Shown: positions 5,690 through 44,498 of the stretch, one piece after another
Position numbering within the stretch: position 1 is the first letter of the stretch
Layout: each line of letters opens with the position of its first letter
Source of the DNA: Epiperipatus broadwayi
Lineage: Eukaryota > Animalia > Onychophora
Length of the DNA stretch: 64,000 bases
NCBI GenBank assembly: GCA_028023455.1
Contig: JAQFVV010000009.1
Span: forward strand, 2,046,001 to 2,110,000
Direction: 5' to 3'
The notes under the pieces: generated by a model
Seen by the model: the letters and a program-made list of their open reading frames with translations, nothing else
What the model was told of the DNA's origin: nothing
Databases searched by the model: none
Translations under genes and position numbers: made by a program

Positions 5690-5800
5690 GAGCTCCTCAC
5701 TGGTGAAAGCCATAAGTTCGAAACTAGTCTGGGGATATTGAATAGGACAACACAGAATAGAGATTTATTAAGCACTAACATCTGGCATCCATTAGTAATT
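5690..5800 (+). repeat. Family A fragment with degenerate hammerhead (5694-5735)
   Basis: TCCTCA-CTGGTGA-AAGCCATAAGTTC-GAAA-CTA-GTC-TGGGGA; core A6>G. Followed by family A arm sequence. Confidence 0.75.
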
Positions 5801-5990
5801 AAAGCTTATAGTCAGAACCATAACTGCGATGAAAGAAAAAAGTATGGTGTTAAAACAGCAATATGTGGAATTGTAGACATAACATGATGATATAACTATT
5901 TTAACTGCATTAGTTGTATATTAAACTGTTATATCAAATTTATTATATAGGAGTGAGACATAGATCCAATATTTATAATATCAATGGTAA

Positions 5991-6152
5991 AACTCTTCAT
6001 ACAGTAGTACCACTCAGTGCAAACCAGAGTAATCAATGGATGCAATGGATTGCTCTGGATTGCACTGAGTGACATTACTATATGGAGAGTTTTGCCTGTT
6101 TTAACAGCTTGAGCAAGTATAAGAAATGGTGATCACGTGATGTTTACTGGTT
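5991..6152 (+). mobile_element. Family A fold-back retro-element, short copy (arms 5991-6042 / 6045-6096 plus 3' tail)
   Basis: Inverted arms match family A; tail ends TGGTGATCACGTGATGTTT (6127-6145). Imperfect TSD TAATATCaAtGGTAA 5976-5990 / TAATATCgAaGGTAA 6153-6167 (13/15). Confidence 0.8.
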
Positions 6153-6299
6153 TAATATCGAAGGTAATTGGAAACATTACATTTAATAAAAAGGTACTCC
6201 GCAAAATTGCTGAAAGTACAGTGACAAAATAAAAGATTGTGTGTACTTTTGTTTGCTGAATATATTATTGAATCTATTATTGCAAGTAACATATTTTTG

Positions 6300-7850
6300 A
6301 TGAACTGGATATGTGAAGTGAATGAAAAGTAACAAGGCAGATCCTATTATGGTAAAAAGATTATCTCCGAGATTCAGCAGATACTACTAATCGCTTTTAT
6401 CGGCTGAGAATAGAAAAAAATAGAAAGTTATACTTTTAGAGTGTTGATGTATTTCAGAAAGATTTATTGCAGAAGATACCATGGGTAAATGTTAATCAGA
6501 CTCTAAAATTAGCACGTGATATATGGTTATATTTGTGGTGCATTATTACAAAATTCTTAAAAAAAAATTTTTCTGAAATAAAAATGGCCATATTAATCTA
6601 TGAACAATTGGTAATGAATTTCTATCAATGACCAATGTTACTACGTGATCATATCGTAACTAAGAAATTTCTCTACGGTATTTAGCTTTTGAATGAGAAT
6701 TTAAAGCATATTCATAATTTAAAAAAAAAACCTTAAAATCTTGAGTTTACAATTGACTACTAATGAATACCACAGATAATCAAGCGTTATTACTTGATTG
6801 TAATATTCTATTGTTTAATTATTCTTTTTGCCTTCTGGGAGAGAATTTAATACGGTATATACAGATAATAATTTAAAAAAAAAAAAAAAAATTTATTATT
6901 TAATTTCCATAATCCAAATTACGTAAAATTTAATTATAATGGCTTAAACAAACGTGTTTTGTTTACTAGCGTGCGATCATTTTATGGAACTGTCCATTAA
7001 AATTCCAAGTATAGTATTTATAAGTTTTCTAGAAAAGTTTTAAGCTAACAATTCCTGCTCTCAAAAACCTATTAAAGAACGGAAGTAAATTACAATTCAA
7101 AGCGAGACCAATGCACTTGCTCATTTGAGTCATTGAAGTTGGAAAATCTAGTTTGTTATGGAAATAAGAGAAATGGTGCTGTTAACATAACCTTCAAAAA
7201 AAAAAAATTGATCTCATGGTACTTACCGGATTATGTAAATAATGATGAACAATGATGACGGATTATTTAATTCTTCGTTCAACTCTTTTACTAAACTTAC
7301 TAACCGTAGTCCCATATGTACTTTGTTTGATGATCCGAGTAAATGCGTACGTATTAGTTGCATTTGATATTTTTTTATTTATCCATTGAACAAGTTAACT
7401 GAATGATATAACTTTTGAATCTTTTAAAATTTAAATAAACACATACGAGTGAATATACGTAATAAAACATGTAGAAGGTATATGTTTGAGATACATCTAT
7501 TCGAGCGAGTACCTATTGTATGTGAAATTTATCTTGAGTGAGTTTATACCTATGTCTTTTTCGCTGTGACTTTATAGAGGAGATTCAGAAGAGGCCTTCA
7601 TCCTGCTCTAAGTTATTTTTAAAGACTGTCTTTTCTATTTTAATTATATATTTTTATGAGATACTGAATAATAATAGTAATAGATACGCTTTGTTCAGTT
7701 TTTAATTTTATTATGTTTTCCCAGGAATAAATGAGTCTCTGTAGGATTATTTGAAAATTTAAAAGTAGGTGGGCAAGGTATGAATCGAAGAATATTAATA
7801 ATTATTCGTTAAGTATGGTCGTCCTACTTTCAGAAAAAAACAAAAATATA
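6300..7850. promoter_or_regulatory. CpG-rich island / putative promoter of the GPCR gene
   Basis: Many intact CpGs (e.g. agcgtgcga, gcgtacgt, tcgagcgag) against near absence elsewhere outside young TEs. ETS-like CGGAAGT at 7080-7086 and CCAAT at 7108-7112, upstream of the ATG at 7242. Boundaries approximate. Confidence 0.55.
7242..7346 (+). CDS. Probable exon 1 of a cAMP-receptor-like (class E, GCR1/GPR157/CrlA-like) GPCR: MMNNDDGLFNSSFNSFTKLTNRSPICTLFDDPSKC
   Basis: ATG at 7242 with in-frame upstream TAA (7236-7238). 35 open codons end at a phase-0 donor TGC|GTACGT (7347). Two N-glycosylation sequons (NSS, NRS) and a CTLF...C motif fit an extracellular N-terminus. Lies in the only host CpG-rich island and joins in frame to the phase-0 exon at 30043. 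Family call is from remembered motif similarity, not a search. Confidence 0.6.
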
Positions 7851-8059
7851 ATATATGACCAAAAGATGAGTTTTGGATGACTATTTAAATTAGACCTATG
7901 TAGTATCATTATATCCACATATAGCACCCACTGGTCTTTTAGGTTGTTTATTCAACATCTTTTAGCTTTTTCTAGAAAATGTTTACATTTGCCTTATTAA
8001 AATTTATTGTATTCTGGTTTCAGCCATAAACATTTTAATTCATTGGAGTTTATTGTATT

Positions 8060-10250: not shown

Positions 10251-12964
10251 AATTAACATAATCCCGTGCCATAAACTCCAGAGCAAGGTATAATTTTGGA
10301 AGTTTTATATTTACCAGCCTCTAAGACTCAAAGGAGCAAGGCTTTGCAAATTTTTTTGCATTATTATTTCTATTGTACAATTGTAAGTAGCTTATAATAT
10401 TTAAATTGAGATGATTTATAGATTTTTCGCTCCTGTATCTACTTGATTCATTTCCAATAACTATGGGTAATTCTTTCCTATTCCCCTCAATGTTAATTTT
10501 AAAATTTTTTATTTTATTGGTATTAATGCAATAACACTGTCCATCAAAAAAATAAAAGCTTTTTCCGAAGATCCTAATTGAAACATTGAAGCATAGCTTT
10601 AATTAAAATGATCACTGATACCATTGACCACTTTTAAATTTTATTAGAATTTTTATTGAAACATGTAATTATTTCCAAAATAAAAAATCCAAATTTAAAT
10701 CATATCTAATTTAGCATCTTGCTATCACCTTTCTCTCAATGGTCTAATCTTTTAAAAAAAAAAAAGTTTATAGCTATCTACTTGTCCTTTTAAACTTTTT
10801 TGTCTCTAGAAGATGAGCTTTATGAAGATCAGTCAAATAATTTGTTCTGTGTTGAAAAACCAAAATCAAATCAAATTTAGATGTTTCATATTGTCATTAC
10901 TGATATTTCTATCATATCTATACTTGTTAAATGAGCAGTCCATCAGGTATGGCAATATCATCATATTTTGTGAACCAAACTATTTTTAGACAAGCTTTTC
11001 TCTGATTTTCCACATTACTGCAGAACAGGATGATATTTATAAATAGAGTTGCCCAAACATGCAATCATTTGCCATATATGACTTTTATCACAATCTACTT
11101 ATAAGAAATTTATAGATTATAAGATTAAATGGAAATCATAGAGTTTGATAAACATATTTTCATAGCCTTTTCAATGCCAAGATTTCTGCATACTTTGTAC
11201 ATACTTGTACATTGTATATAAAGGTGAGAAAAGAATAAGATTAGAATCAGAATTGATGTGTTTGTGATTTAAGGATGGAAGAGTGATTACCCAAACATGC
11301 AATACTTAAATCAGACTCTATATCTGAGTTAAGTGATTAAAAAATAACATGGTTAAAAAGAAAAGATAAAAAAAGACTGCTTTTATTAAAAGCCATTTAG
11401 TCTTTGAGAGCCAATAGTATAAGGCGGTAGGCAATATTCTTTGTCAGGCATTACATATTTGCAATTAATTCTTAATATCATAATGATATGATATACCTCT
11501 TAGAAAAATATTTTTATTCATTAAAATTGTTCTATCATTCAGTGTTGTGTCTGTGTTTGCTAGCAATTTTGCATGTGTGTATATGTTTTTAAATAATGGG
11601 TAAAGATTTTTATATATATATATTGTTATTACAATATTTTTTAATTAATGAACTTTTTTTGTTTTATATATATAAAGTTAGCATGTATATATATGTTTGA
11701 ATGTTAAGTTCTCTTTCTAAAAATAGGTTAAATGTTTAACAGAATAATATGAACAAGTGATAACTACTTAAAAATTTTAATGAGTATTTTATCATTAAGA
11801 ACTTGATAAACAGACTGTATTATGATCAAATAGATTTTATTTTTATCTAAATATTGAAAATGATAGTTTTTATTAGATATGGAAGTGCAAATTTTTGTGT
11901 GTTACATACTTAATGTATTCTTATTAAACTAGATTTTATCAATTAATTTTAAGGAATTGTATAAAGATGATAGTTGATTATCATTTATCTTTATATATCA
12001 AGAGTAACAATTTTTCTATTTATTTTATTTCAGAGCAATCTATTGTTATCAATAGAAACTAATTGATAATGTTATATCCACATTACCTGACTAGTTTCTA
12101 GTTATTTGCTGGATAACTTCAGTGAGGGGCAGGATTTGCACCTGTTCATCTATGGAGCCATTTTAATTTCTTTTATATTATCAACCTGATATTTAAAAAC
12201 ATTTAAAATTTTGTTTTCTGATTTGCCCCTATTTATCTAGGAGTCAGCCAAACTGATTTTTAAAAACACTGCACAAGTTTGAATAAGCCAAGGCCTATCT
12301 TTAAAAAAAAGTGGATCTTAAATAAAAATATTTTTTGGATTCCAATATTATAAAATACATTATTAGAAAGTAATATTTTTTTTTATTGAATACCAAATAT
12401 TCAAGAATTCCTAATATTATGGCACAAAAATAAAACATTTTATAAAGCACAGTAATTTTTAAAATAATATGCTTTAATGTTTTTTTTCTTAGCCTTCATT
12501 ATTATATGTATTGTTTTTTAAATTAAAAATCATAATAAATAGGTTTTTTAAATTAAGAGGTTCTAGGCTAGTGCCTTGTTTGCATATGAATAAAATAATA
12601 ATGTGATTCATCCAACTTGTTTATTTTGTTATATAAATTTGACAATATATCAATAACTATATGAATGCAAATCCTGCTTCTTAACAGAGATACTCAAACT
12701 TATATTAAAAAAGCTATCAAGTAAATAGAATGAATTATTATTCTAATAAAGATATTGGAAATAAGCAGAGAAGATTAAGTAATGTATTTATATTCACATT
12801 TTAAAAACAAATAGTGATAGTTTGAAGCAGAGATATTTTCTAAAATCATTATATTTTGATACCAGAACAGTTTTTAGATTTATCCATGTAACTAAAATAG
12901 ATTTTATGAAAGAGAAATATATATATATATCTTAAAGACATTAAGTCCAAATAGTATAAATAAT

Positions 12965-13362
12965 TAAACAGGCAAAACTCTCCATACAGTAGTGTTACCC
13001 TGTGCCAACCAGAGTAATCAATGGATGCCAGAAGGCTTGTGCATAAAATCCCCATCTAGTGCCTACTCATCCAATATCCCCAGACTAGTTTCTGGCTTGT
13101 GGCCTTCGTCAGTGAGGAGTCTTGGATCTGAAAGCACTGCACCTAGATCTTAGGATCTAATGCAACCCTCCAGCAGCCACCTTTTATCTCTACTTAACTA
13201 CAAAACTATGAGAATGAAATTGAAAATATTTTCAATCTAAGCTCAATAGCTTATATAGTCATATGGGTCTGAACTCAGTTCAGCACCCATACATTTTGGG
13301 GTCTTTGGCTCTTTAACAACCATAGCCACCACTATCCTATTAGATGGTGATCATGTGATGTT
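12965..13362 (+). mobile_element. Family A element: long inverted part (HHR on - strand) plus terminal motif
   Basis: Arm starts AAACAGGCAAAACTC, ends GGTGATCATGTGATGTT. TSD TAGTATaAATAAT 12952-12964 / TAGTATgAATAAT 13363-13375. Confidence 0.85.
13077..13118 (-). ncRNA. Minimal type I hammerhead ribozyme (best family A copy)
   Basis: TCCTCA CTGACGA A-GGC-CACAA-GCC-A GAAA CTA GTC TGGGGA: stem I 6 bp, intact core, palindromic ACUAGU stem III, GUC triplet. Confidence 0.85.
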
Positions 13363-13823
13363 TAGTATGAATAATGTTTGATTTTTTCTAAGATGTTGAA
13401 AATAGTCCAATATGTAAGTACAAGTAAAATGTTATCATCATAATAATTCTTCAGGCAAACATTTAAAAAATGTAATTGGGGGGGAGGGAAGTATACATGT
13501 TGAGCATATATATATATGTGGATGTAAATTTCAAATGCAATATGATATTTCTTCTATTAGAAATTATTCTGTGACAAATAGTGACATGATTTGCAATATA
13601 TTTTATGTTAGAAATCTATCAAGAGACAATCTTCATATTCAGTAGTTTTATTTAATTTTAAGCGGAAATCTATGCTGAAAAATTCTGAATGGATTTGATT
13701 TGTTGAGTAGCAGATGTATAAAATTTCTCTTGAGATTCATTTCTAAAGATGAAAGATCTTTAAAGACTATTGGGTCCTACTGAAAAATTATAAAACAATG
13801 GGATTAAAAACCTGTTTTTTTTT

Positions 13824-16660: not shown

Positions 16661-17799
16661 TAACATGTTTATTATTTTAATTTTATATATATTCCAAAAT
16701 TAAATAAAAAATATTACTTATTTATCATCATGACTGCCATATTGAATTTCTATACTTTTGGTTCAAGATACAATTTTTATATGAATAGCAAGAAAATTGG
16801 AAAAATATATCAATTATCATAAAATAAAAAATGTAAACATTTAAAAAATCATTAATATTAATTTGTATATTACAAATTTTCATAAATGATTTTTAAAATT
16901 GACATTATAGTAACAATTATATTTCTCTTAAATTATAATTATAATTATAAAATTACAATTAAATAAATAAATCAAATAGTTTATTGCTTAGAAGTTTATA
17001 AAATGTCTCAAGCACCAGAAGTGACAGAGCTGGGTCTGGTCCTTGGATCTTGAGCTCCAAAGTCTACTGCTCAACTACTGTCCAAATATCATTTTTTCTT
17101 AATAAAACAAAATAAAAATTACATATTGTAATAACTTCTCAAGTATATTTATTAAAATTAATACTGAAAAATTATAATTGGAAAATGCAATTATATATGC
17201 ATATATTATTAACTATGAATATGTTGACTCACACATATACATATCAACAGTTACTCGCATAGGTTGCTAACTTTTTTTTCTTTTTCTTTTCCACTAATAT
17301 AAGTTAAATAATCCATGGTTTCTTGCTTAAATTGAATTTTTACTTAAGTTGAACTCTCAACTAAGGTAGCAAAATAAACACCACAGGTAATATTCACAAT
17401 CATGAGATAAATATTAACTAAAACTGTATTGACCTATACATTGTTTTAAAATTATTTGTGTTTTGTGTGCATTAGAAATTATTTATATAAGCCTGTATTC
17501 ATGTAAGTAGGAGGCTGCTTATAATAATTTCCTCGTATGAAAAATAATTCATCAAAGTATTAAAAAAACAAAATTATTTATTATTAGCAACAGCCACTTG
17601 CAAATGAATATAGTCATCCCAAGTCCAAAAAATAACTAGAGATAGTTTTGTGATGTCTATATAAATCAATCCTTGAACTGCAAGTACATTCACATATAGA
17701 ATATTCTGGTCCATTATTTTATGTGTTTGGTATTTTGCAATGTTGTTTTTTAACTTCTGCAATAAACTTTTCTTTCTGAAAGACTTCAACATTGTGTCT

Positions 17800-22322: not shown

Positions 22323-25300
22323 TACTCTTTTTCTAGAATTCTGATAACTGCAACGATTAATTACATTCTCCAATAAGGTAAGGTCTCTTATCTAGCAATA
22401 TTTGCAATCAGCAAATATTTCTTGGAATTGTCGATCACCATTACATTAATGCTTTAATTAAATTCCTCATTTATCAGTATGCAATCTAAAAACAATCTCT
22501 CGAATAAATTCTAGTTTTTCTAGAGTGCACAAACTTGTATGCAATTTTTACAAAAATACAACAAAAAATTATTAAATTTTTCAACAATCCATTTGCAGAT
22601 AAAATGATTTATATAGTTAAATAGATTTACAAAATATAACATCAAGCTTTATTTTTATAGAAATATCATTGGTTTAATCTTTGAATTCGCTATTAGTGTA
22701 TTGTAACTTTGTTAACAGAGCTTTATTAATCTATTTTGAAAGTTATCTATACAAATCATTTGATTTATATATATATATATAAATAAACATTAAAGAGCAT
22801 ATTAGCTAATTTCTTTAATGACATGACCCCCTCATCACCTAGAGGAACAATAAAGAAAAAGGCATTATTCATCAAATTTGGTACTGCTAGATATTAAGTC
22901 TTTTAATAATTTACTACTCTTGTTTGTTCTCTAGCTAAGAATGGCTGGATTCTCATTTATCAATCAATATTAGATACCAGCTGGGTTTGTTATGATACTG
23001 TTGCTTGAAAGAAAAATCTTAGATTTATTAGAATTCTTAAAAAGTTTTGAGGTTTGTCTAATCCAGATGCAAACTCTAATTATAGAAATAATAAGTGGAT
23101 GAACAACTATAAAACTCCCCTCTCTCTATATATATATAAATATAGTATTTGCAATGGCTTTATAACGAACAATTAAAAATAGAAGCTTTTACTAATTTTG
23201 TTAAGAATTTGATTTTTTTTTAATGCTTGATTTCACTTTTTACTATTAAAGTAACTTTTGAATCATACAGATATATATATTGAGATGGATAGTGATTTAT
23301 CTCAATCTGTAATTTATTTTAAAAATACAATAGTTGGTGGTTGTGAATCAAATTCAAGTTTCATTATGTTTTTTCTATAGATTTGTATTATGTAAGAACA
23401 CACACATCAAAGGTCTTAGTTTAAAATCAAATTAAATTGATTTTAATTTAGTTTTAAAAAGATAAAGAAACTGATGTATTTTAACTAATTATATTTCAAA
23501 TTAATCTATTTTAAAATTTATGTTATGGGAACAAAGCTTAATTAAATATTAATCTATAAAATTTGACTCAATTAGCTTTTATTATTATTAATTAAAATTC
23601 TTGAAAAACCAATTGCTTTTAAGCTCTATTTAGGTTCTGAAAATGTCAATTAAATATATTTTAGAGATTAAGAAAGCTAAGTGTCATCCATAAATATGGG
23701 CTTGTTTAATTAATTAAAGAAATTTGTAAACATGAATTAAAATAATTATTGATCTGTTTAATTAGAGAATTTTGTATACAGGGGTAATTAAAATAAGGGT
23801 AATTAAAATAATTACTGGCTTGTTTATTTAAAGAATTTTATAAACATGGGCTTTTTAATTAAAGAAAAAATGTTTCGCAAAATGGACACTGAAAATATTT
23901 GAGAGTTGTTTTGGTCTTTGCTTTTGCCTGCTTACCATGATGTGTACTGAGCATTTACCAGTAGTTGAATTAGTAAATATGCATTCCTGATTCCGCAAAT
24001 GAACTTCATTTCTCTAGTATGTAGCCCATAACCATTAAGTCATCAAACTCCGTTTCATGAATTTAATCCAATACCATGCTAATTATTTTTATATATGCAC
24101 CTAAACAGATGTGCTTCTCAATGGTAAAAGGAAAAATTTCATGACAATTCTACCTGAAAACAATCCAATTGGGACTAAGATTGGAAACCTGTAAATGGTA
24201 AGACTTCACTAGTGAATTACTAAAAAGCTCTATTTTTGAAAATATACATAAATCAAATTCCACTTTTAAAGAAAAATAATATCTACTTAGTCATATTTTT
24301 TGGATTTAAAGGTAACCTTTTATTTATTGAATTATTTGATAAACTTTTATTACCAACAAACCAGTTATATTTATAATTTAATTTAGATGATTTTATGTAT
24401 TTATCTTTTATATTAATGTATTTTAATACTTAGACATTATAAAACTTAATTTTGTCAGTATATTTGATGGCATGGTCAGCTTTGAATATATTTATTAAAT
24501 ATTTTTCTATTTTAGAAGTACAAGATGTGATTTATTTTAAAAATTTAGTTGGGTAAAATAGTTTATATTTTAAATAGGCAAGAGATAAAAAATCAATTTT
24601 GTTTCTTTAATTGTTTTTTCTAAAGATTTTTTAAAAATCACATCCACAATTATTAATAATCAAAATTTAATTTTAAAATAATCGACACTTAGTTTTGGAT
24701 CGATGTTGCTTTTAAAGAAAAAGTTTTTTAAAAAAAGAAATATATGAAGATTTGGTTATTTTTTAAATAGTTTAAATTTAGTATAATTAAAATTTAGTGT
24801 CTCACTGAAGATAGTCAAAAAATTATCATGCCTAGTATGATGTGCACATAACTATATATATATATCATTTATTAAGTTGATTTTATTGCATAAATTTGTT
24901 GGCAGTTTGCCCTGTTTACTTGTTTGATTCACATGTCTAAAATTAAAGATTGATATATAAATATATGGGTGTGCCTTTTCATATAGTGATCCTTAGATAT
25001 TTTATCCACCAAACTTAAATTTTCTGCATGTTTATTTGCCTTCCCATGATATATATTATTCCTGCTTGAGATATTCATGATTGATTTTGCTTCAGGTTCA
25101 GAGATATTTCTCCCCATAAATTGTATTTTTGCTTTGTACTCTGGGTGATTAAGAGGGCTATTTATTGTTCCATTTTGATGTGGTATGAGATCAGATGCAC
25201 AATGTATAGATCTAAATTTATAATGGTGTGCATGGTGAGAACATTTATAGTGAATTTGTTATTGATTCTTTTAATGTAAAAGTGAAATATATATGTACAT

Positions 25301-27803: not shown

Positions 27804-28096
27804 TAAAAAACCTTAAAACATCACGTGATCTCTATCTCACATGCTTGCTCATAACTGTTGTTAAAATAGACAAAAACTCTCTCCATACAGTAGTGCCACT
27901 CAAAGCAAGACAGAGGGTTGCATTAGATCCTAAAATCTAGGTGCAGTGCTCTCAGATCCAAGGCTCCTCACTGACGAAGGCCATAAGCCAGAAACTAGTT
28001 TTGGGATATTGGATGAGTAGGCACTAGATAGGGATTTTATGCACAAAGCCTTCTGGCATCCATTGATTACTCTGTCTTGAGTCGCACTTGCCTTTT
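27804..28096 (-). mobile_element. Family A element with hammerhead on + strand (27965-28006)
   Basis: Terminal motif AAAACATCACGTGATC at 27815-27830. HHR TCCTCA CTGACGA AGGCCATAAGCCA GAAA CTA GTT TTGGGA. Perfect TSD TTAATGTCAATTT at 27791-27803 / 28097-28109. Confidence 0.85.
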
Positions 28097-30042
28097 TTAA
28101 TGTCAATTTATTGATCACATAATAGTTAATTTGTGTGGTATGTTAAAACAACATGTATGTGTGTGATATTTGTCTCAATTTAATTATTTTATTATTAAAT
28201 TCAGCAAGAGATATATTTGTATGAACATCAACTATTTATCTCTAATTTTGTGCTCTTCTATATGTAATTTAGCATAATTTCATGCAATACTTTCAAGTTA
28301 TGGTATCTGCTATTAAATATTTGGTAATTAAAATTCTGTGTTTATTAAAATTTTGCTCTTGATTTGCTTAACATATGCTACAAATGTGTGTGTCTCATTG
28401 ATTGATCATAGAATTTATTATCTCAAGTTCTTATGACTTTGCTAAAGTAGGTTATGGTAATGACAGAATAGGAGGTTTTAAAAAAAGTGAAATCAATTAT
28501 TTTAATAAATTGGAAATTGTTTCCTCCCTTTGTAGGATGAATCAGGATTTGTTCTGATAAACAATTTAAGTTGATCTCATTATATAAATGTTTTTGTAGT
28601 CAATTGAAGAAAGTAAAGTATCACTAAATGAGGATTGTGACAAAGTGACATCTTTGAGGATACTTTGGAAATTGAAATTTCTTGTATGTCCTTAAATTGC
28701 CTTTTGAATCTTCAGTAGTCAGTCTTACTAATTGAGCTTTATGATGGTAGCTCTTTCTGCTTCAGCATTTAGACTCTATTAACTTTCTTTTGTATACAGA
28801 GCTGTCCTCGAGGTAACAATGCATCAGATTAAACTGTTTTTCAATTTCTTATTTAACCTGGATCTCAGTCTTAATATTAACTAATGATTATCTTTTACTT
28901 TAATTGGATTGAGCACTCATTATTTTTCATCCTAATTACTAAATATTTTTAAATAATCACATTTTTTTCTTAATTAATTATCAAATTTTTCTGCCTTTAA
29001 ACATGAACACTGTATATATGTAATTACCTGTGTGTGTATATATATATGCAATCAACTGTAAATACAAAAAGAGAATACAATTAAGTGAGGATAAAAATAT
29101 AAATGAAGAGCATGCAAAGTGAACTCTGATTTGAATTCAACTGAATAACATTCTGAAAAATATTTATATTGGTATAATTATTATTTTCCCCCCTAATTTT
29201 AAGTTTATAGGCCACACTTACATGAATCCATATGTTATTTTCTTTTGTGATTTGGTTAACTATTCTACTGAATTGGAATTGGTAATGGAGATGAGAAATT
29301 TTGTTGTATCTATTTTGCTCCATGGAATATATGCAGTTGCATATACTGAAAATGATTTTAGTGAATTTATCTAAAACAATGTTTTAGGTGGGATAAGATT
29401 AAGAATGCTATTTGGATAGGAAGTATTTGTGAAGATTATTGTTTTCAAGTATTTAGGTAGTTAATTATGTAAAAATGAAAACAGAGATAAAGATATTGCA
29501 ATGAGAACTACATCAGCTAAATAAAATTTTAATTAGGGTAAGAGATTATTTTGTGTTTCATTAGAGATAAAATTAGAATATTAATAAATATTTTGTTTGG
29601 AATAGAACTTTAATTGAGCAAAAAATTGGATAAATATTTTGTTGGCAAAGAGAAAAAAATGTGTATTTTTGAAATATAAATTGGGAAGTGAAGATAAACA
29701 TTGGAAGGATTGGTAATATAAGAAGTTTTTACTAGTGCAAATGAAAATATTTTACTACCAGCTTCCAAGTTAATTAAATATTTTTGAAAAAAAAAAAAAA
29801 GTTGTTTACATATTCTTATATTTTGAATTCTTATTTTAATAAATTTAGAATTAAAGAATTCTTGTTTAAAACAAAGTCCAAATATTTAACATTATTTTAT
29901 CATATATTTATATTTGTTAAACTTAAAATTTTTATTATTGTTAATTATTTATTAATTTACAATCTTTTTTTAATTTAAAAACTGGGTTTATGTTATTTTT
30001 AAAAAAGAATTTATGTCATTATTTTTTCGAATTTCCTTGCAG

Positions 30043-30095: not shown

Positions 30096-32249
30096 GTATA
30101 TTTTTTTTTTTTCATTTTTATATATGTTTATTAACTTATTCTTGCCATATCAATGTTTTTAATGCTTTTTTTAATAAGCATATTGTATTTGTATGTAAGT
30201 GTATCTAGCTAGTTTTAACTAAAAGGTAAAACAAGGATGCAAAAATATTCAAACTCACTATTTAGTAACCTGATGAGAATTTCTTTTTCCTTCACCATTC
30301 CTCTAATGAGGAGTTATTATGAGAGACCTTTGCCCTACAACCAGTCATTGTTTTATATTTTTATTTATATATTTATTTTTTGTTGGATAAACAAATAGTT
30401 ACAGCATAAAATTGCTTTCTCAACTTATGTAACACCTCTTGTTTGGGTCAAGGACATATTTTTTAAATATGTAGTTGACTATGGACTATAACTAGTCACA
30501 TATATAGCTGTTTATAGCCAGTCATAATAACTGTCCTATTAAATGTGTAGTCATAGCTGGAGGATAAAAATACAAGTTTAATCTGGGAAGTTAGGTGAAT
30601 GAGAAGCAAAGCAAAAATGTGATTATGATATAATGTGGCTTTTACTACTGGTAAATAAATTGTACTTTTATGGATATTGAGCTCATGGTTTAATTTTTAG
30701 CAAATAAAAATCTTCATAAGATTTTATTTTTTTCCATACTCACTCCAATATCAATCTTTTTTACATATCTAATATTTAGTTCAGTTATGACTATTGGGAA
30801 TTACTGTAATAGAAATTAATTGATTATATAAAAATTGACTTGAAATGAATATGACATCAATGTAAATAATTTTTACATGTTGTTTACCATAAAAGTGATA
30901 AGATATATATGTACAAAAAAAAATAAATCTTTATATATATAATTATAAAAACAGAAAAAATATAATAATTTTCAGTATAGATATATTTGTAAATATGTAC
31001 TTGGATTTTAAAAAAAAACAAAAGTACATCATGACTGATAAGACAAATTCTGAAAGATATTAATCAGTTTTTATGCTAAATGGAAATCTGTTAATGATTT
31101 TTTTTTTTTCAAATGCAACCCCCTAATAAATGGAATTTAAATTTTAATTATATAATATTACTATATTTAGTTTCTAAATAGAATTAGATTTTAAATGCCA
31201 CACATTCATAACATACTTTCCTCATACAAATATTAAAATGAAATAGTAATGGTATTTGAGAAATTTTTTAATAGAATCATTTAAATACTTTTGTGTGAAA
31301 TTATATTTCTCATTTGTAATATGATATAGAAATGAGGATATATATTAAATTAAAATATGAAAAATAAAGCAAAAACTAATGGATGTTTTGAATTGAAGTA
31401 CATAATCACTAATGAAAAAAATTGAGAAATACAGTGGCAGTGATCAAGTGCAACTCTTCAATTACCAGACTTCATATAATATTGTACAGTTGAATATTTG
31501 ATAACTGTCATTGTTATATAATAAATGAAAAACAATAATTATACTGTACATTCAGAGAAAAGATTGAAAATATTAAATATAATCTTAATACATTGTGGTT
31601 GCCTTTGACAAAAGTACTCAGCTCAGAAAGTGCATCAAGGTTGTATTTAATATTTTCAATGTTTTCTCTGAATGCACAGTGTGAGTATTATCTTTAATTT
31701 ATTATATTCTACTATTACTGAATATATTGCCTACAACTATAGATTATTCATGTCTTTATTGTACTAATATTTATTGAAATCTTAATGATAATGAAGGATA
31801 GGATTTTTACAGATCCATTTTAACACCTTTCCAGAAAATGACTTTTTAAAAACAGAATCTAATATGAAAATTGTAGTGATATATAATAAATTAAATAAAG
31901 CATGCAATATCTAGAAGATTATTTACAAGAAAGTCATATTTTAAGCTACATGAATAAAAATCTTAATCTAATTCATTTTCTAAATGTTTGTTTTAATACC
32001 CTCTCCCCCCAATATTAAGTTTTATTTTCAGAATTCATAAACACTTTTTCAATATCGTTTTTAAATCTCTTCAATTATCTCCAAAGATTAGTGATCTCAC
32101 CAGTAATTTATTTAGCAGTGAATTTTCTATTCATCAATCTTAATCTCTTTAGCTTACATCAGTCCTGGTTATATATTGTAAACAAACTGCTCCCAGACAA
32201 GTGCTTTGTCTGATCTACTATTTTGTATTAATTTGTAGTATAATTTTTG

Positions 32250-33344: not shown

Positions 33345-33580
33345 AATTGGTAATTATATAATACAACTGAGATAAATTTTTATATTGATATACAATAAAT
33401 AATTATAAGAACAAATACCAGTTACAGTTGTATAATTCAGCTGAGATACATTTTTATACTGATATAAAATAAATAGTTATAAGAACAACTATTGTTATAA
33501 TTGTATAATTGAACTGAAATATATTTTCATACTAATATAATTATTAAGAAAAAATATTAGTTACAATTATATAATTCTCT
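33345..33580. repeat. AT-rich minisatellite, ~3.5 copies of ~65 bp
   Basis: Recurrent TATAATTCAACTGAGATA...TTATAAGAACAA. Confidence 0.75.
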
Positions 33581-35387: not shown

Positions 35388-36565
35388 GTTATCTAATAAG
35401 CTTGCCAATAGTTCTTAACAAGCTTTTCAGAATATTTCCAATTGCAGATCGGTTTCTGGCTTCCTTATTGAGGTGTTAGGATATTTAAGCATTAGATTTA
35501 AAATACCAGATCAAGACTAGAATTTTATCTAATGGTTAATTATTAAGTAGAAAATCTGAAATTTTCAGACATCCATATGTCTTCAAATCCAGCTAGCTAA
35601 CTTAAATAGCTATATCAGACTGAACTAAATTTAGATACAACATATTTTAATATCTTTAGCAATATAAACTCACCAAAGCCTTAATAGCAAAAAATATAAT
35701 TGCAAAGAAATCAAGTCATATATCACATGACCTAATTTAACAAGCTTGTATTACAAATGTTATCTAATTAGCTTGCCAATAGCTCTTAATAAGCTTTTCA
35801 GAATATCCCCAACCGCAGACTGTTTTTTGCTATTAAGACTTTGGTGATTTTATATTGCTAAAGCTATTAACATATGGTGTATTTGAACTTAGTTCAGTCT
35901 CATATGGCTATTTAAGTTAAATAGCTGGATTTGAAGACATGATGTCTGAAAATTTCAGATTTTCTACTTAATAGTTAACTATTAGATAAAGTGCTAGGCT
36001 TGACCGGATATTTTAAATCTAATGCTTGAATATCCTACCACCCACTGAGGAATCCAGATACAGAAACCGGTCTGGTGTTAGGGATATTCTGAAAAGCCTA
36101 TTAAGAGCTATTGGTAAGCTCATTAAATAACATTTGTAATACAAGCTTGCTAAATTAGGTCATGTGATATATGATTTGATTTCTGTGCAATTATATTTTT
36201 TGCTATTAAGACTTTGGTAATTTTATATTGCTAAAGCTATTAACATATGGTGTATCTGAATTTAGTTCAGTCTCATATGGCTATTTACATTAGATAGCTG
36301 GATTTGAAGGCATATAGATGTCTGAAAATTTCAGATTTTCTATGTAATAGTTAACCATTAGATAAAGTGCTGGGCTTGGCCTGGTATTTTAAATCTAATG
36401 CTTAATATCCTAGTACCTCACTGAGGAAGCCAGAAGCAGAAACTGCTCTGGGGTTGGTGATATTCTGAAAAGCTTGTTAAGAGCTATTGGCAAGCTCATT
36501 AGATAACATTTGTAATATAAGCTTGTTAAATTAGGTCATGTGATATATGACTTGATTTCTTTGCA
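35388..36565 (+). mobile_element. Family B hammerhead-bearing ~372-bp tandem multimer (retrozyme-like) with 5' inversion, inserted in (TA)n
   Basis: ~1.15 units inverted (35388-35820), then 2 direct units (35823-36565). HHRs at 35441-35474 (-, degenerate), 36038-36078 (+) and 36415-36454 (+). Each unit carries GGTCATGTGATATATGA. (TA)n on both flanks. Confidence 0.88.
36038..36078 (+). ncRNA. Minimal type I hammerhead ribozyme (family B)
   Basis: CCACCCA CTGAGGA ATCCAGATACA GAAA CCG GTC TGGTGT: intact core, palindrome ACCGGU, GUC. Stem II weak in this copy (GC-CAGAA-GC in the next unit). Confidence 0.75.
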
Positions 36566-37399
36566 TATATATATATATATATATATATCACATGCTAATA
36601 GCCAAGCTTATCAATGCCAAGAGTTTTCAATCTGTTATCAAGGTAACCTATATATATATTTAATAGATTGATTTTAATAATTCTGTAAATAAACAATGGG
36701 TAATCGATATGCCATGCTAAAAATATATAATATTTTATAAAATAATAATCTCTCAGTGTGGACACAATAAAAAAAAATTTGCAAATTAGACTTTCTAGAA
36801 CTATTTTAATAATGTTGCTAATAATTCTCTCTCTCATAAATGCTTATTCACCTTTCAGACAAAAAATAGTTCATTTTCATCTAAATCTCATGTTATATGG
36901 ATGAAAGGGGTGAAACATTATATATTTATAAAGTCTTGACAACATCTGTTCATAACATCAGATAATATTTTATATCTAAATTCTAATAATTTTAATAACA
37001 CCATTAATAAATAACTATTCTCAGAACTATTCACATTATTAGAATTTATTAGCTGAAACTGTGAACTGGTTTGATTAAGATTTTATGAAAATTGCTGCTA
37101 ATATAATATATTCAAATATCAATAATTGATTTACTATTCATATAATAACTTGGAATTTATATAAAAGTGGTTATTTTTTATTAGAATGATGAATTAGCAA
37201 TGATACAAAAGAGGGCATTATTTTCAAGTTTAATAAAATGATTTGAAAGTCTGATTTATAAATTATCTTTATGGTATGCACATTGGTAGTTTTTTTTCAA
37301 AAAATGTTATATATATATATCAATTTACTTATCTTGCCTAGTTATGAAAAAAACATTCTCATTCACAAATTGCTATTGAAGTATAGGAATATATCTTTA

Positions 37400-38530: not shown

Positions 38531-38709
38531 TCTATTAGAAAATTTGCTTTATTTTATTGTACATTTGATTCAAGATAATTTTTTTTTTTTGTTTTAAAAT
38601 CTCAAATATTTTATAATAGAAATTATAAATGTAGAAATTTTTATCCGCTTTTTTTTCCAAAGATGTATAGCTAAGAATCATTTCCCAGTTGACTTGTGTG
38701 GTTTGATAT

Positions 38710-38785
38710 AGTAATAGTGTGGTGGATTCTGGAGCCCAAGATTCATAGATCATGATCCCAGTTCTGTTAATTATGGTGCTTGAAC
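38710..38785 (+). repeat. Old ~80-bp tRNA-like SINE; related copies at 17008-17080 (-), 40871-40945 (-), 43850-43900 (+)
   Basis: Shared core GACTYTGGAGCYCAAGATCC...TCCCAGYTCTG...TGGTGCTTGA. B-box-like GGATCGATTCC in the 43860 copy. Confidence 0.55.
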
Positions 38786-41661
38786 TTCTTCTGAACTCTG
38801 GAACAACAAACCACCCAGGAGAACCAGATAGAAATAGATACTTATGTATGCCATTTATTCTACGACTTTATGTGTAATCATATTTTATATAAGTCATGTT
38901 TTCTTTTCAAGTCAATGTTTACTTTAAGTTATGATGCATAATATGAAAATATTTATTGATAAATGAAAATAAGCTTGCAATATAATCATAATAAATATTC
39001 ATAAAGCATAAGAAACACAAGAATTGAGAATAGTATTTATTTGTATGCATTTTAAAAATGTTTTGCGTTTTATACGTATTAGATATTGTTTACATAAGTT
39101 AAAATCTACCTATATACACTTAGAGATTTAATTTAGGGAGTATTATATTATTATCAATGCTTTGATTAATTACTTCATATTGTATTTAGGAGAGACTTTA
39201 CAAATGTTGACAATAATGTCAGTGTGTCTCATTTATCTGTAATCAGTGCCTAATATTGTCAAAATGACTTCAACAATATTTTCCACTATTATTTTTGTGA
39301 TCTGCATAAACAACTTGATATTTGATCTTTTGATTCAACTGGCATCATCTTTCATCAAAACATTAATGTTTTATTAACATGTAATTATTATTTGTTTTAG
39401 AAACATTGATAATATTAAAAAAAATCTCCCTGAATAAGCTAGAATAAAACAGCAAATATCAAATGATAGTCTCTTATTGCATATAATGTGCTATTAGAAA
39501 CAATTCTCTTCACTTAAATTTTAGTTGAGAAAAGAACCTTAGATTGAGTTGTTTTTTGAGTAGCAGTTTCAAGGAGGTAAAAGAAAATAATATTAAAATT
39601 GGTAAACTAGAAGTAAGTCGTATAAAGTAAGAATGAAAATGATATAGAAATTATTGGGGGTTGGGATAGTGGAAATAAATTAATGTAGTAGATTGGTAAC
39701 TAATTTAAAAATGGAGAAAACATTTTAAGATATTTATTTAGTTTAAGATAATATAGGTAAAGGAATTTTTGTAATACCGATACAATAGTTACAAAGTTGC
39801 ATGATTTCTTTATGCCTTAAAGCTTACTAATGTATTATTTTTAGTCTTAATCATAAATATGTACCTTTTGTCTCATAGTGTGATAAAAGAAATTACTGTT
39901 AGTATTATGCTTGGTAAAGCTAATTTTATGGAAGAATGTCTTAGTTGGGTGTTTCTATGGCCAAATTTATATATGTAAAATGATAGTAAAAAAATGTACT
40001 ACTAAAACCATGAATGGAAAAAAAAAAATCCATAACAAGGAAAAGCACAGCCAATAATATATATGTTATTTAGATTCATCAACCAATATTTTTGAAATGA
40101 AAGAGGTAGATGTAATAAAAATTTTAGATGGTAAAACAAGCATAAAATCAAATTTACTTTTTAGCAATCTAATTAAAATTCAAGATGATATAAATCAGAT
40201 TTCAAACATAAATTTTTAATGAATATATTTTTCAGTTCATCATTAACATAGACAATCTCTTGATGAAAAACCTTTTTTTTTTTTTACTCTTAAGTTTTAG
40301 CCAATAATTATTCTATAGTGAAGAAGTAAAGAACCCATGTAATGAAGTATTCAGGAATGATTAAAGTGACTGAACTAATAATATTTTTCAGAAACAGTGG
40401 CAGATTTATGTATTTGTATTGTTTATCTTTTTTTAAGAAGAGATAGAAAAAGTTATCTTAGGTATTATCATTCAGTTAAAGAAATAAGAATAGATATTGT
40501 TAGTTATTTAATTTTAGTAGAATAACCCTAGGATCTAGAAATCAGCCCATATTGGTTCTAAAGGATTACCTATTTAATTGCCTTAATGTAACTCACTTGA
40601 ATTATTTAAGATTGTAGTATCAGAAGAAAAGGAAAGCTAAAACTACATTATTAACACAATATCATTACTTAGTCATATGTGTGTGGGGGGGGGTAAAATT
40701 TTATGCTGTAAGGTACTTTATTCTATGCTGGAAGGGAAATTATAAAAATCTCATTCATTGATAGTCATATATATGTAATATAAATAGAAATCTCATTGAA
40801 CTGTAAAACAATTTTTTTAATAATAAATAAACAATTGAATGGCTTTATTGTTGGGGAGTCCATAAGAAGGTCAAGCACCAGAAGTATCAGAACTGGAATT
40901 GATCTGAGGATCTTAAACTCCAGACTCTGACCCTCTAAACCTCATAGCGCAATCTTTTTAATAAGCAGAATAAAAAATACCAGTATTTCATTCAAATCTG
41001 TTATCACTTTATTTAAAATAGAATATATATTTTATTTAATTACATTAAATTATATAAATATTATTAATGTATTGGATGCATTTTGTAAAATAATATTTTT
41101 GGATTATTATTTGATATATGAAACTAGATTATTTGAAATCAGCATATATACATCCACAGATAGAAATCAATAAAAATTTATAACATACTAAAACATCACG
41201 TGATCGCTGTATGAAGAATTTGCTACTGTTTAATTTATAATGTACAGATGCATTTATTTTTTACAATTAGATGTGATTATTTTATTTGTTATGCTATGTA
41301 TGTAAATGATTTCACATATCTGCTTTAGACAAATAAAGAAAAAGAAACAATATTTAAATTGTTTTAAAGTAAAATGAGAATACATTAAAAAGAGAAAGAT
41401 TTAAAAATTAAAAGTAATTTTAAAAGTCTTGCTAAAATTAAAATTGTTTGTGTATTTCTAAATTATCAATTGTTGCTTATATATATTAATTTGATTTTAT
41501 ATATTAAAATTATTGTTAATTATTATTTATTTTCATGTGTATCAAATTATTATTGATAATTGTTTCTTAATTCTTATTGAATATTGCATTTAATTGCCTT
41601 AGTTGGGTTATGTGACTATGATATATATGCAGTGAATATATGATTGATCATTTTTATTATT

Positions 41662-42045
41662 AAACAATGAGGATTGCCAATTCCTCAACAAGCTTTGTGA
41701 TAAATGCTTAGTCAGAGAAAGCATTTAAAATATCTATCAGGACCCCCCCCCCAAACTTCTGACCATGGTTTCGTACTTTGGCACTTCTCAGAGAGACTCT
41801 AGAATAGGTTCAGACACTAGATCAGTGGATCTAGAATCTGAACCTACTCTAGCACCTTTCTGAGAAGTGCCAAAGCATGAAACCATGGTCAGAGGTTGGG
41901 GGGGGGGGTTCCTGACAGATATTTTAGATGCTTTCTCTAGCTAAACATTTATCACAAAGTTTGTTGAGGAATTGGAAATCCTCATTGTTTATATCTTACA
42001 AGCTTAAGAGAATTGGGTCATGTGATCTATGACTCTTATTTTGAA
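41662..42045 (+). mobile_element. Family C near-perfect ~330-bp fold-back with two opposed hammerhead-like motifs plus ~55-nt tail
   Basis: Inverted repeat 41662-41990 with a 4-nt central loop (AGTG, 41824-41827). Motifs at 41756-41796 (-) and 41855-41895 (+). Tail has GGTCATGTGATCTATGAC. Perfect TSD CATTTTTATTATT at 41649-41661 / 42046-42058. Confidence 0.88.
41855..41895 (+). ncRNA. Hammerhead-like ribozyme with variant core (CUGAGAA)
   Basis: CCTTT CTGAGAA GTGC-CAAA-GCAT GAAA CCATG GTC AGAGG: stems I and II pair, palindrome ACCAUGGU, GUC. Confidence 0.7.
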
Positions 42046-42905
42046 CATTTTTATTATTGTAAAAAATAAAAAAGTAGATATATTTTTTGATAACCAAATA
42101 ATAATAAAATGTAATTTATTATTTTAGATTATTAATATTCTAAATGTGGTAAAATTTGGATAACCTCAGTGGTGAAAAGCTTATCTTTTGATTAATATTA
42201 TGTAAATATCTAGTACGTAAATCATCACACACACACACAAACTCATTCAAAGGAATGTTTGATATCCTATATGTATTCACACTGTTGTTATCCTATTTGT
42301 TCATTATTATTTTGATCATCACTATATTTGTCTCTAGATCTCTTGATTAGGTAGGTACTTTTTGTAACAATATATAGAATATCAAATATCATTCATAGGT
42401 ATTAAAAACAAAAAAAAGAATTTAATCTATAAAATTTAATATACCAAAAATAAAATTATAAATAAATAATAGCTATAGCTGTCTTGAAGCATGTATGATA
42501 TCCCAGTAACGTTTTGTTGCAGTTAAAATTTAAACTGAAATTAATGTTTAATTTATACAACATTATTATTTAAATGGAATTTTGGCTTGTATAATTAAAT
42601 TGTTTATTTCCAAGTTATTTGAAAATATCTTGTTGATTTTTTTTTTAAAATCATTTTTCACACATAAATTAAAAACATTTACCAAAATAAAAACTAACTA
42701 TTCCAAATAATAGTATGCTTTGCAAAAAGTGGCTTGGTTTTTTATTTCCTATCATCAATATTATATAAATTTTTATACAATCGTTTATGTTCATATATAT
42801 GTATATATTTTAATGCACATTTACATTCCATTCTTATGATTGCCTACACACTTATACTGCTTTATATATAATGCTATTTTCTTGATTTGTCAACAATATC
42901 TTTTT

Positions 42906-43414
42906 CATCACATGATCACCATTTCTTATGCTTGCTCAAGCTTTTAAAATAGGCAAAACTCTCCATACAATAGTGCCACTCAGTGCAAGCCAAAATAATC
43001 AATAGATGCCAGAAGGCTTGTGCATAAAATCCCTATCTAATGCCTACTCATCCAATATCTCCAAACTAGTTTCTAGCTTGTGGCTTTCATCAGTGAGGAG
43101 CCTTGGATCTGAAACCACTGCACCTAGATCTTAGGATTGAAAATATTATTATGTTTTCAATTTTAGACTCATAGTTTTGTAGTTAAGTAGAGATAAAAAG
43201 TGCTATGAAGGGTAGTATTAGATCTTAAGATCTACATACAGTGCTCTCAGATCCAAGGCTCCTCACTGATGGAAGCTATAAGCTAGAAACTAGTCTGAGG
43301 ATATTGGATGAGTAGGCACTTGATAGGGATTTTATGCCCAAGCCTTCTGGCATCTAGTGATTACTCTGGCTTGCACTGAGTGGCATGACTGCATGTAGAG
43401 TTTTGCCTGTTTTC
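42906..43414 (-). mobile_element. Family A full fold-back (~192-bp arms 42946-43137 / 43222-43413, 84-bp spacer) with two opposed hammerheads
   Basis: HHRs at 43058-43099 (-) and 43260-43301 (+). Terminal motif at 42906-42920. TSD ATATCTTTTT at 42896-42905 / 43415-43424. Confidence 0.88.
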
Positions 43415-44402
43415 ATATCTTTTTTCATTAATAGTCTACCAGCATTTAAAACTACATTAATGCTGGTTTAAAATATGAAGAAGCAAGTGATATAATCATT
43501 CTATTCATACTCTCATATATATAAAGTAATGTAACTTTTTTTCTTTTTTTTCCTCTCTATTTTTATTTAAAGTTATTTAATGTATTTAATTTTTTTTTTC
43601 ATATCCAGTTTTTAAATAATTCTTTATTATATATTTCAATATTAGATAATTGATCATTTTTGATACTTATATAACATTTTATTTTTAAATAAAAATCATT
43701 TAATTTAGCCAATTTATGAGAAATGAGAACTTTTGAAAGGAATCAATAAATCCTCTTTTAAAAGAGTTTTATAAACATTCTAGACTCAGTTTTTATTACT
43801 TGCTATTTATAATATATATCTCTGTGCAATAAGGTGTCAGACTTGTGAAGTGTAATGTCCTTGGATCGATTCCAGTTCTGGCACTCCTGCTACTCAAACT
43901 CATGAACTCTCACATAGTAGTGCCATTCAATTAATTAATGTACATATAGTATTTAAACTTAAATACAAATCCATTTCAAACCTTTAATTTCATTATATAA
44001 GATGTTTATTCAGAACTTGTGCTTCAACAATAAACACACCATCCATATACATAAAATTACTTTTAAAAACCATATGAAAAAACTCTTTCATAATAGATCA
44101 AAATATAGCTACAAACAATAGCTGAGATCAGCAAAACTATAATCCAATCATTTTCCATTTTATATGTGAAGCTTTTAAAAATTGCTGTTAAATTTTGATC
44201 AGTAAATGCCAATATGTTTTTAATAATTAAATGTTTACACCTTTATATTTTTTTGCATAAACATTGATCAATTATTTGGATGGGTTCTTTTCTATTTATA
44301 GATATATATAATTCTGTAACATCTAATGTAAATAATTTTTTTATATTAATAACTAAATGAAATATGTCCAGAAAATCTTAATTTATTCTGTAAAACTTTT
44401 TC

Positions 44403-44498
44403 TTAAAACAGGGAAAACTCTCTATACATATTGCCACTTAGTGCAAGCCAGAGTAATCAATGGATGCCAAAATGATGATCATGTGATGTTTATTGGCT
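44403..44498 (+). mobile_element. Family A minimal copy (inverted arm start plus terminal motif)
   Basis: AAAACAGGGAAAACTC...GATGCC joined to ATGATGATCATGTGATGTTT. TSD TAAAAcTTTTTC 44391-44402 / TAAAAgTTTTTC 44499-44510. Confidence 0.8.

Follow-up and report, generated by a model that had tools for sequence, protein, structure and literature searches.

The window analysed here is a stretch of 64,000 nucleotides from the onychophoran Epiperipatus broadwayi (contig JAQFVV010000009.1, positions 2,046,001 to 2,110,000 of the forward strand; G000:C9:2046001-2110000), part of a 5.6-Gb AT-rich animal assembly of 18,588 contigs. Its GC content is ~25% except in the stretch between 54 and 60 kb. It holds eight complete insertions and one old fragment of three repeat families, here termed A, B and C, whose units each carry a type-I minimal hammerhead motif. 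Considered along with their relatives across the genome, these repeats are, with good probability, non-autonomous, non-coding retroelements of the animal non-LTR (long terminal repeat) retrozyme or Penelope-derived kind, behaving as retrozymes mobilised by Penelope-like elements (PLEs).

Insertions of three repeat families in the window

The window has 10 occurrences of the motif GRTCAYGTGAT where 0.07 would be expected, and a hammerhead-like pattern gives 3 matches against an expectation of 0, with further mutated hammerhead copies being recovered by tolerant matching. An earlier reading made from the letters alone (the sequence-only reading) had reported seven insertions and two fragments; each exists at, or a few bases from, the place given for it, and repeat analysis shows the listed intervals to belong to a small number of families whose copies have long inverted arms. 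Every insertion is composed of an antisense arm beginning at a fixed site of the unit (X), a variable junction, and a sense arm running to a fixed 3′ site (E). Positions in the family A unit are counted after rotating it to end at the 3′ end of the insertions, which places the start of the hammerhead core at 248 and the predicted cleavage after ~277.

Family A contributes an old truncated fragment on the plus strand (5692..5793), in sense orientation, covering unit ~240-340 and retaining a mutated hammerhead core, CUGGUGA. The plus-strand insertion at 5986..6152 joins an antisense arm (unit 405->332, at 5986-6043) to a sense arm and tail (338->452, at 6045-6152) with the tail motif at 6131-6141, and is bracketed by a target-site duplication (TSD) of ~15 bp (TAATATCAATGGTAA / TAATATCGAAGGTAA, 5977-5991 / 6153-6167). 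At 12965..13363, also on the plus strand, an antisense arm (398->13, at 12965-13342) with an intact hammerhead core on the minus strand (13083-13112) is followed by a sense tail of 22 nt (424->445, at 13343-13363), all within a 13-bp TSD (TAGTATAAATAAT / TAGTATGAATAAT, 12952-12964 / 13364-13376). The minus-strand insertion at 27804..28096 has an antisense arm (350->190) followed by a sense arm (346->450); the hammerhead of its antisense arm thus lies on the plus strand (27971-28000), its tail motif is at 27820-27830, and its 13-bp TSD is AAATTGACATTAA (28097-28109, 27791-27803). What had been taken for a fragment at 41191-41205 proves to be a complete mini-insertion of 48 nt on the minus strand (41184..41231), made of a 27-nt antisense arm and a sense tail of ~20 nt, with the tail motif GATCACGTGAT at 41195-41205 and the TSD TTATAAATT (41232-41240 / 41175-41183). 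A further minus-strand insertion, at 42907..43414, belongs to the sub-family A2, recognisable by its helix II (AGC/GCU); its antisense arm (399->114) is followed by a sense arm (204->438), with hammerheads at 43064-43093 (minus) and 43266-43295 (plus), the tail motif at 42907-42917, and a TSD of 11-12 bp (GAAAAAAGATAT / GAAAAAGATAT, 43415-43426, 42896-42906). Finally, the plus-strand insertion at 44403..44500 pairs an antisense arm (403->327, at 44403-44472) with a sense tail (~428-452) that includes GATCATGTGAT at 44477-44487, within a TSD of ~10 bp (AAAACTTTTTC / AAAGTTTTTC, 44392-44402, 44501-44510).

Family B is present as one plus-strand insertion in a (TA)n microsatellite (35388..36565), both of whose arms are multimers: the antisense one spans 35388-35829 (unit 325->1, then 376->248) and the sense one 35823-36565 (unit 7->376, then 1->376). 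Hammerhead cores lie at 36045-36072 and 36421-36448, and the tail motif at 35722-35732 (minus), 36158-36168 and 36534-36544. Family C is present as the plus-strand insertion at 41662..42045, with an antisense arm at 41662-41823, a sense arm at 41828-42045, hammerheads at 41860-41890 (plus) and 41761-41791 (minus) that both have the minority core CUGAGAA (A at position 8), the tail motif at 42016-42026, and a 13-bp TSD, CATTTTTATTATT (41649-41661, 42046-42058). By direct reading, the TSDs of the window copies are 9-15 bp long. The inverted arms reach 345 nt in B, and at 42938-43421 they measure 200 nt with 87% complementarity. That five of seven insertions carry the hammerhead, as had been claimed, holds true: the two without it (then delimited as 5991-6152 and 44403-44498) cover only unit ~327-452.

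The tails at 6131, 27820 and 41195 are GATCACGTGAT, in which 10 nt centred on CACGTG form a perfect palindrome, while 99 of the 100 A1 tails among the genome-wide matches listed read GATCATGTGAT; the CACGTG form belongs to other sub-families, which are probably older. The motif GRTCAYGTGAT also resembles the E-box/M-box.

Unit structure, kinship and abundance

The insertions are pieces of longer units that are arranged head to tail. The family A unit is 453 nt long, as can be read from tandem copies at three loci (L012, L013, L030), and that of family B 376 nt, with two sense units standing in the window itself at 35823-36565. The hammerheads of family C recur every 422-430 nt, giving a unit of ~425 nt. 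Across a unit trimer the longest ATG-initiated open reading frame (ORF) is 42 aa, and GC is 0.40 / 0.32; the units are short, head-to-tail, non-coding and low in GC, as are those of metazoan non-LTR retrozymes. The tail, i.e., the segment from X to E, lies inside the tandem unit and is no appendage. In this respect the proposed layout of inverted segment, direct segment and 3′ tail stands as an architecture, with the amendment that the tail is unit sequence that finishes at one end only.

The families are related to each other. Collinearity between A and B spans nearly the whole unit, including the block at 13238-13330 / 35580-35690 for which a likeness had been proposed, and that between B and C or A and C begins at the hammerhead and continues to the 3′ end. 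The predicted homology of B and C downstream of the ribozyme is borne out by an alignment score of 41 against 17.1 ± 2.5 for shuffled sequences. Conservation is highest in three blocks: the hammerhead, the surroundings of CUGAAYUYAGUUCAG, and a 3′ module in which a hairpin is followed by a CATTGTTTA-like element and then by AAGAGA..TGG..TCATGTGAT. Unit structure and collinearity together thus uphold the view of three related non-coding families sharing one architecture.

All three are abundant. A genome search gave more than 2,583 first-look candidates for A, more than 6,484 for B and more than 2,747 for C, and the copies that were scored are 89-95% identical. Exact 20-mer tails of A occur 23,047 times and exact C hammerheads 3,466 times, in each case against 0 for the control. 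Beyond this genome, words of family A are present in 16 contig-only sequencing runs from 12 organisms and 7 studies, none of them on record as RNA. For one family A copy (L030:2199-2750), half or more of its exact 31-mers recur in each of at least 12 organisms from these studies; such sharing of exact 31-mers indicates that family A is common to related species at high identity.

The hammerhead motif

In each unit of A, B and C the hammerhead is of the type-I minimal form, with a helix III that is a loop-less palindrome of the dimer type. A generic descriptor (CTGANGA N8-16 GAAAC N2-6 GTC) finds 152,176 matches genome-wide against 481 for a reversed control. The consensus core of A (n=53) is CUCCUCA-CUGAYGA-A-GGC[CACAA]GCC-A-GAAAC-UAG-UC-UGGGGAU, that of B (n=62) CACCUCA-CUGAGGA-A-GC[CAGAA]GC-A-GAAAC-CGG-UC-UGGGGUU, and that of C across the genome CUGAGGA-GUGC[CAAA]GCAU-GAAAC-CAUGG-UC; the CUGAGAA of the window C copy, with A at position 8, is a minority form, making up ~13 of 100 among the matches listed.

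Between families the core CUGANGA...GAAA...UH remains constant and helices I-III change in a compensatory manner. Family A has U-A at pair 6 of helix I where B has A-U; pair 3 of helix II is G-C versus C-G. Helix II occurs as GGC/GCC, AGC/GCU, GC/GC, UGC/GCA, GUGC/GCAC and GACC/GGUC (AGC/GCU, UGC/GCA and the last two as further lineages among the matches listed), and helix III as the palindromes ACUAGU, ACCGGU and ACCAUGGU, with a further palindromic variant, ACCAUUGGU, among the matches listed. Many of the deviations are products of CpG decay (e.g., ACCGGU to ACUGGU or ACCAGU, and GCAC-G to GCAU-G), the non-palindromic helix III forms ACUGGU and ACCAGU being among them. Pairing was quantified over 48 unique instances with an intact core, using a parse anchored on that core since a MAFFT alignment displaced the GAAAC of family C by one column. 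In register, helix I pairs in 85% of cells, falling to 53% and 37% when the partner is slid by 1 and 2 positions; for helix II the corresponding values are 56%, 16% and 7%. A G-C closure is present in C2 and D and U-A in B2, and in A and B an A follows position 9, then G-C, with an extra A before G12 that places A opposite A.

Relative to shuffled sequences, monomers running from cleavage to cleavage have more stable folds (z -3.8 and -3.4). When 55-62-nt segments are folded thermodynamically as dimers, a calculation uninformative without tertiary terms, the hammerhead dimer is recovered for neither A nor B. The density of family A contigs is highest over the hammerhead block and lowest over unit 400-437. 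A, B and C may have ribozyme activity and form circular RNA.

Anatomy of the insertions

Over 27 family A insertions, X clusters at unit 395-409, whereas E clusters at 448-453 and, in a smaller group, at 436-438 directly after the motif; among the 25 with an antisense arm, the outer end of that arm lies at the fixed site in 23. In 32 insertions of family B, E is at 374-376 and X at ~315-326. The X-E tail is thus found on the sense side only, measuring ~45-55 nt in A and ~50-60 nt in B and C, and it carries GRTCAYGTGAT, with E falling 11-21 nt downstream of this motif. The same outer boundary is seen in other species: contigs from four other organisms (runs X1, X2, X12 and X15) leave the element at unit ~393, which corresponds to X, and enter heterogeneous flanks.

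The interior of the insertions follows no such rule. The arms often exceed one unit, reaching 2-3 units with clean unit-unit junctions, and the inner junction coordinates, W and Y, are scattered. The arms meet at the same coordinate in 0 of 26 A insertions and 2 of 23 B insertions, which rules out a snap-back hairpin, makes the "fold-back" designation of the sequence-only reading misleading, and points to two copies that were started separately. An inversion breakpoint at the cleavage site is likewise ruled out as a rule, since just 2 of 52 A junctions fall within ±6 nt of it against 1.5 expected; the junction of the window B copy is ~9 nt upstream of the cleavage site, inside the core. Both arms of an insertion nevertheless share rare variants, such as the CUGAGAA of the two C arms, or the sub-family A2 membership of both arms of 42907-43414, implying that each insertion arose in a single event.

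The TSDs and the tail bias noted in the window persist in the larger sample: TSD matches of at least 11 bases flank 59% of A insertions versus 1.1% of shuffled pairs, and the tail is consistently one-sided. Most 3′ flanks of family B are (TA)n, as against 1 of 27 insertions in A; these surroundings mask the TSDs of B, yet they amount to a target bias in themselves.

Penelope-like elements in the same genome

A genome search with the GIY-YIG model PF01541 yields more than 10,242 candidates, some within open frames of 800-900 aa and some in tandem or inverted pairs ~3.1 kb apart. Two long PLE ORFs have reverse transcriptase (RT) motifs and a CxxC-bearing GIY-YIG domain. In one PLE copy (L064) the antisense and sense arms match at 99.4% identity across 1,015 bp, the sense arm alone continues for a further ~43 nt, and the TSD measures 12 bp; its anatomy is the same as that of the A/B/C insertions.

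The 3′ regions of 20 PLEs were sampled from the more than 10,242 candidates, with a bias towards one clade, and carry conserved motifs of their own. In the abundant clade with a C-terminal GIY-YIG (L061-L080), a motif lies in the 3′ untranslated region (UTR) ~330-460 nt past the stop codon (e.g., L061:2180-2240 and L080:2070-2125), consisting of CCUUGAAAAUGA, a hairpin and then YGAAAC(G/A)UUGG. The hairpin covaries (GAUUG/CAAUC, GACUGU/ACAGUU, GACUAUA/UAUAGUC), AAUAAAGUUUUUGAAAAGAA follows ~60-90 nt beyond, and as CUGA is missing the motif is not a canonical hammerhead. Reading it as a core variant with A3-U8 (AUGANUA) suits certain copies (L075, L077) and fails for others (L061, L080). A likeness of the A tail to the end of the L061-type PLEs (ATGGTGA / TTAA) is not significant, 0.06 of shuffles scoring as high.

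A 580-aa ORF rich in K, N and I (L080:34-1773) returned no family in a Pfam hmmscan, although the same ORF scored 40 bits for PF01541 in the genome search; its identity as a PLE rests on that match together with the motifs read in it. Composition-biased PLE proteins can thus escape standard domain scans.

Two pairs of same-strand A-type hammerheads on one contig, C1, are 2,554 nt (1047949/1050503) and 2,548 nt (1913282/1915830) apart. As this spacing is no multiple of 453, the pairs could represent a candidate autonomous element with an ORF between two pseudo-LTRs (pLTR-ORF-pLTR).

Parallels with retrozymes and Penelope-like elements

Metazoan non-LTR retrozymes have been described by Cervera and de la Peña (2020, PMC7229834) and by Li, Clavereau and Pollet (2026 preprint, 10.64898/2026.07.22.740005), the latter proposing a PLE origin of retrozymes in vertebrates. 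Like A, B and C, they are non-coding tandem units of low GC, 150-450 bp long, each with a type-I hammerhead; they occur in tens of thousands of copies, their monomers are highly self-paired (PMC7229834), and they coexist with PLEs, their proposed mobilisers or ancestors. The link between animal retrozymes and PLEs in the literature rests on co-occurrence, a shared ribozyme type, and pLTR similarity in frogs. A difference lies in the ribozyme, which is canonical type-I in coral and mussel retrozymes but minimal here, with a loop-less helix III, a very small helix II and loops that make no contact with each other. In the strict sense retrozymes self-cleave and form circular RNA, and A, B and C are candidates for that status. 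As for insertion products, PMC7229834 and 10.64898/2026.07.22.740005 report no inverted arm, one-sided tail or two fixed ends, and describe TSDs only as "larger than 4 bp when present".

The hammerheads of A, B and C are closer to the minimal hammerheads of PLEs than to those of coral and mussel retrozymes. PLE motifs act as dimers (Cervera and de la Peña 2014, PMC4209133), a theme also taken up by Lünse, Weinberg and Breaker (2017, as cited in PMC6765202). Both have the conserved core, a palindrome at 15.2-16.2 / helix III that makes a second copy necessary, one additional nucleotide behind position 9, covariation particular to each family, and very high copy numbers. Helix II is shorter here (2-4 bp versus 6-8 bp in schistosome PLE motifs), and A and B differ in the extra A before G12, with A opposite A.

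A third parallel is with the insertion anatomy of PLEs as set out by Craig et al. (2021, PMC8557442), in which partial tandems stand next to an inverted and 5′-truncated copy, one end has a tail, and microsatellites are favoured as targets. A, B and C share the partial tandem, the adjacent inverted 5′-truncated copy and the one-sided tail, and family B alone also shows the microsatellite bias. In contrast, PLEs code for an RT and GIY-YIG ORF, and the A/B/C units contain none; the tail is 30-40 nt in PLEs (PMC8557442) versus 45-60 nt here, where it is conserved and templated as unit sequence; and the sampled resident PLEs have no 3′ sequence in common with the three families. As a kind, the combination is not undescribed, for retrozymes, dimeric PLE minimal hammerheads and the PLE anatomy have all been published. 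A, B and C are of a known kind of animal element (PMC7229834; 10.64898/2026.07.22.740005; PMC4209133; PMC8557442), and what is added is an increment: a quantified PLE-type insertion signature for retrozymes, namely the inverted arm, the one-sided tail and the fixed sites X and E.

A possible mode of mobilisation and its alternatives

If A, B and C are retrozymes mobilised by PLEs, their life cycle might run as follows. The units would be transcribed as multimers, in which two hammerheads would pair into an active dimer—the loop-less palindrome of helix III means that two motifs must come together—and the RNA would be cut after GUC/GUU into unit-length pieces able to circularise. A Penelope-type RT/GIY-YIG endonuclease acting in trans would make a staggered cut in AT-rich DNA, (TA)n in the case of family B. 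The first cDNA would start at E, and a second, primed from the other nick, would start at X, 45-60 nt upstream of E; each would extend over a length that varies and often exceeds one unit, and the two would be linked at no set internal position. This would yield an antisense arm from X followed by a sense arm to E, with a one-sided X-E tail and a TSD of 9-15 bp. The RT is presumed to be of the PLE type and the priming to be double, and GRTCAYGTGAT may serve as a recognition site for the RT.

Several observations weigh against this reading. On the side of the ribozyme, the A opposite A between core and helix II in A and B, along with a helix II of only 2-3 bp, means that activity in these families may be low or absent, and PLE minimal hammerheads cleave poorly in vitro (PMC4209133). 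The Rfam models Hammerhead_1, HH9, HH10, Hammerhead_II and Hammerhead_3 give no match, either at the gathering threshold or even at E ≤ 10; these models require a hairpin at helix III where there is here a loop-less palindrome, so the miss counts against family membership by score and not against the motif. Within each family, conservation of the hammerhead does not exceed that of the flanking sequence, as is expected for neutrally decaying copies, a comparison that is uninformative where copies are 90-95% identical throughout. Contig ends do not pile up at the predicted cleavage site, contigs being unable to show RNA ends. On the side of the mobiliser, the microsatellite bias is seen in family B only. 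The sequence-only reading had envisaged a PLE sharing the GTCAYGTGAT tail; GRTCAYGTGAT occurs in 0 of the 20 sampled PLE 3′ regions, which come from several sub-families, and the alignment scores of these regions with A, B and C are within the range of shuffles. Further, tblastn with two PLE ORFs detects no coding remnant in the window or in 60 retrozyme loci. Thus, of the proposed retro-type insertion by a PLE-type RT, the TSDs and the PLE-like anatomy stand, and a partner among the 20 PLE 3′ regions does not.

Among the alternatives, A, B and C might be heavily 5′-truncated pLTRs or 3′ ends of an autonomous PLE with the same hammerhead and tail. PLE insertions are indeed heavily 5′-truncated (PMC8557442), and the two ~2,550-nt pairs on C1 could be of the pLTR-ORF-pLTR form. 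This is nonetheless unlikely in view of the clean head-to-tail unit junctions, which extend over up to 2-3 units with no coding sequence between them, the empty tblastn searches, and the different 3′ ends of the sampled PLEs.

Inversions of the 5′ part of L1 reportedly arise by twin priming, an account associated with Ostertag and Kazazian (2001). A second alternative would invoke this process, with A, B and C as SINE-like (short interspersed nuclear element) sequences mobilised by the RT of a LINE (long interspersed nuclear element) and not of a PLE. There is a real likeness, in that an inverted 5′ part is joined to a direct 3′ part and two independently primed cDNAs are the likely cause in both; variable TSDs (9-15 bp) with a fixed 3′ end are also typical of target-primed reverse transcription, and X is close to Y in several window copies, as in twin priming. 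Twin priming, however, starts at variable internal sites, whereas the second start here is fixed (X), near the 3′ end (23/25 in A), and the arms are multimeric or duplicate the same region. The absence of a poly(A) or simple-repeat tail and of a tRNA-, 7SL- or 5S-like head further speaks against a SINE, and the multimeric arms, one-sided tail and (TA)n targeting are hallmarks of PLEs (PMC8557442) that are reproduced by the resident PLE L064. A LINE-driven origin is therefore very unlikely.

The long inverted arms and TSDs might also recall DNA transposons bounded by long terminal inverted repeats, whether miniature inverted-repeat transposable elements (MITEs), fold-back elements or those of the Helitron type, but X and E do not form an inverted terminal pair, differing by the one-sided tail of 45-60 nt, the arm lengths and the junction differ in every copy and arms can be multimers, and the TSDs vary in length while Helitrons make none, rendering such an origin extremely improbable. 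As little credence can be given to satellite DNA spread by recombination or extrachromosomal circles with the hammerhead as a non-functional relic: the tandem arrays, the equal conservation of motif and flanks, and the contigs without ends at the cleavage site (with the limit given above) would fit it, but not the thousands of dispersed short insertions with precise ends and TSDs, down to one of 48 nt, or the compensatory changes that keep three helices across families around an invariant core.

For the retrozymes mobilised by PLEs, a more specific proposal is possible, if doubtful: that X, E and the GRTCAYGTGAT segment form a cis-acting module by which a Penelope-type RT/endonuclease would engage multimeric or circular ribozyme RNA.

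Other features of the window

The window also holds other repeats. A Ty3/gypsy-like LTR-retrotransposon coding region lies on the minus strand at 55675-59182, with a 659-aa ORF (zinc knuckle, RVT_1, RNase H), an integrase ORF of 374 aa and, at 58820-59182, what may be a gag ORF, and accounts for the GC of 0.38-0.43 at 54-60 kb. An inverted repeat unrelated to A, B and C at 31516-31707, with 77-nt arms that are 84% complementary and 38 nt apart, could be another small hairpin element. A dispersed repeat, TCAAGCACCAGAAGT...AGCTGG...GGATCTT..., likewise unrelated to them, is present as two direct copies and one inverted copy (17008-17065, 40871-40928, 43846-43894), and short tandem duplications lie at 33354-33491 (74-nt period, 88% identity) and 23735-23862 (66-nt, 77%).

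Implications

For annotation, these families are a caution, as A, B and C are easily mistaken for MITEs or satellites. The ~152,000 minimal hammerhead motifs with an intact core make up a visible share of the 5.6-Gb genome. Over dozens of copies, the insertion products of retrozymes carry the signature of PLEs, matched by a PLE in the same genome, and the integration mechanism of PLEs thereby becomes approachable from sequence data. Should the cis-acting module be real, families of >20,000 copies would record how PLEs make a tail and an inverted arm by double-primed reverse transcription, and would prove on structural grounds, for the first time, that PLE machinery integrates animal retrozymes.

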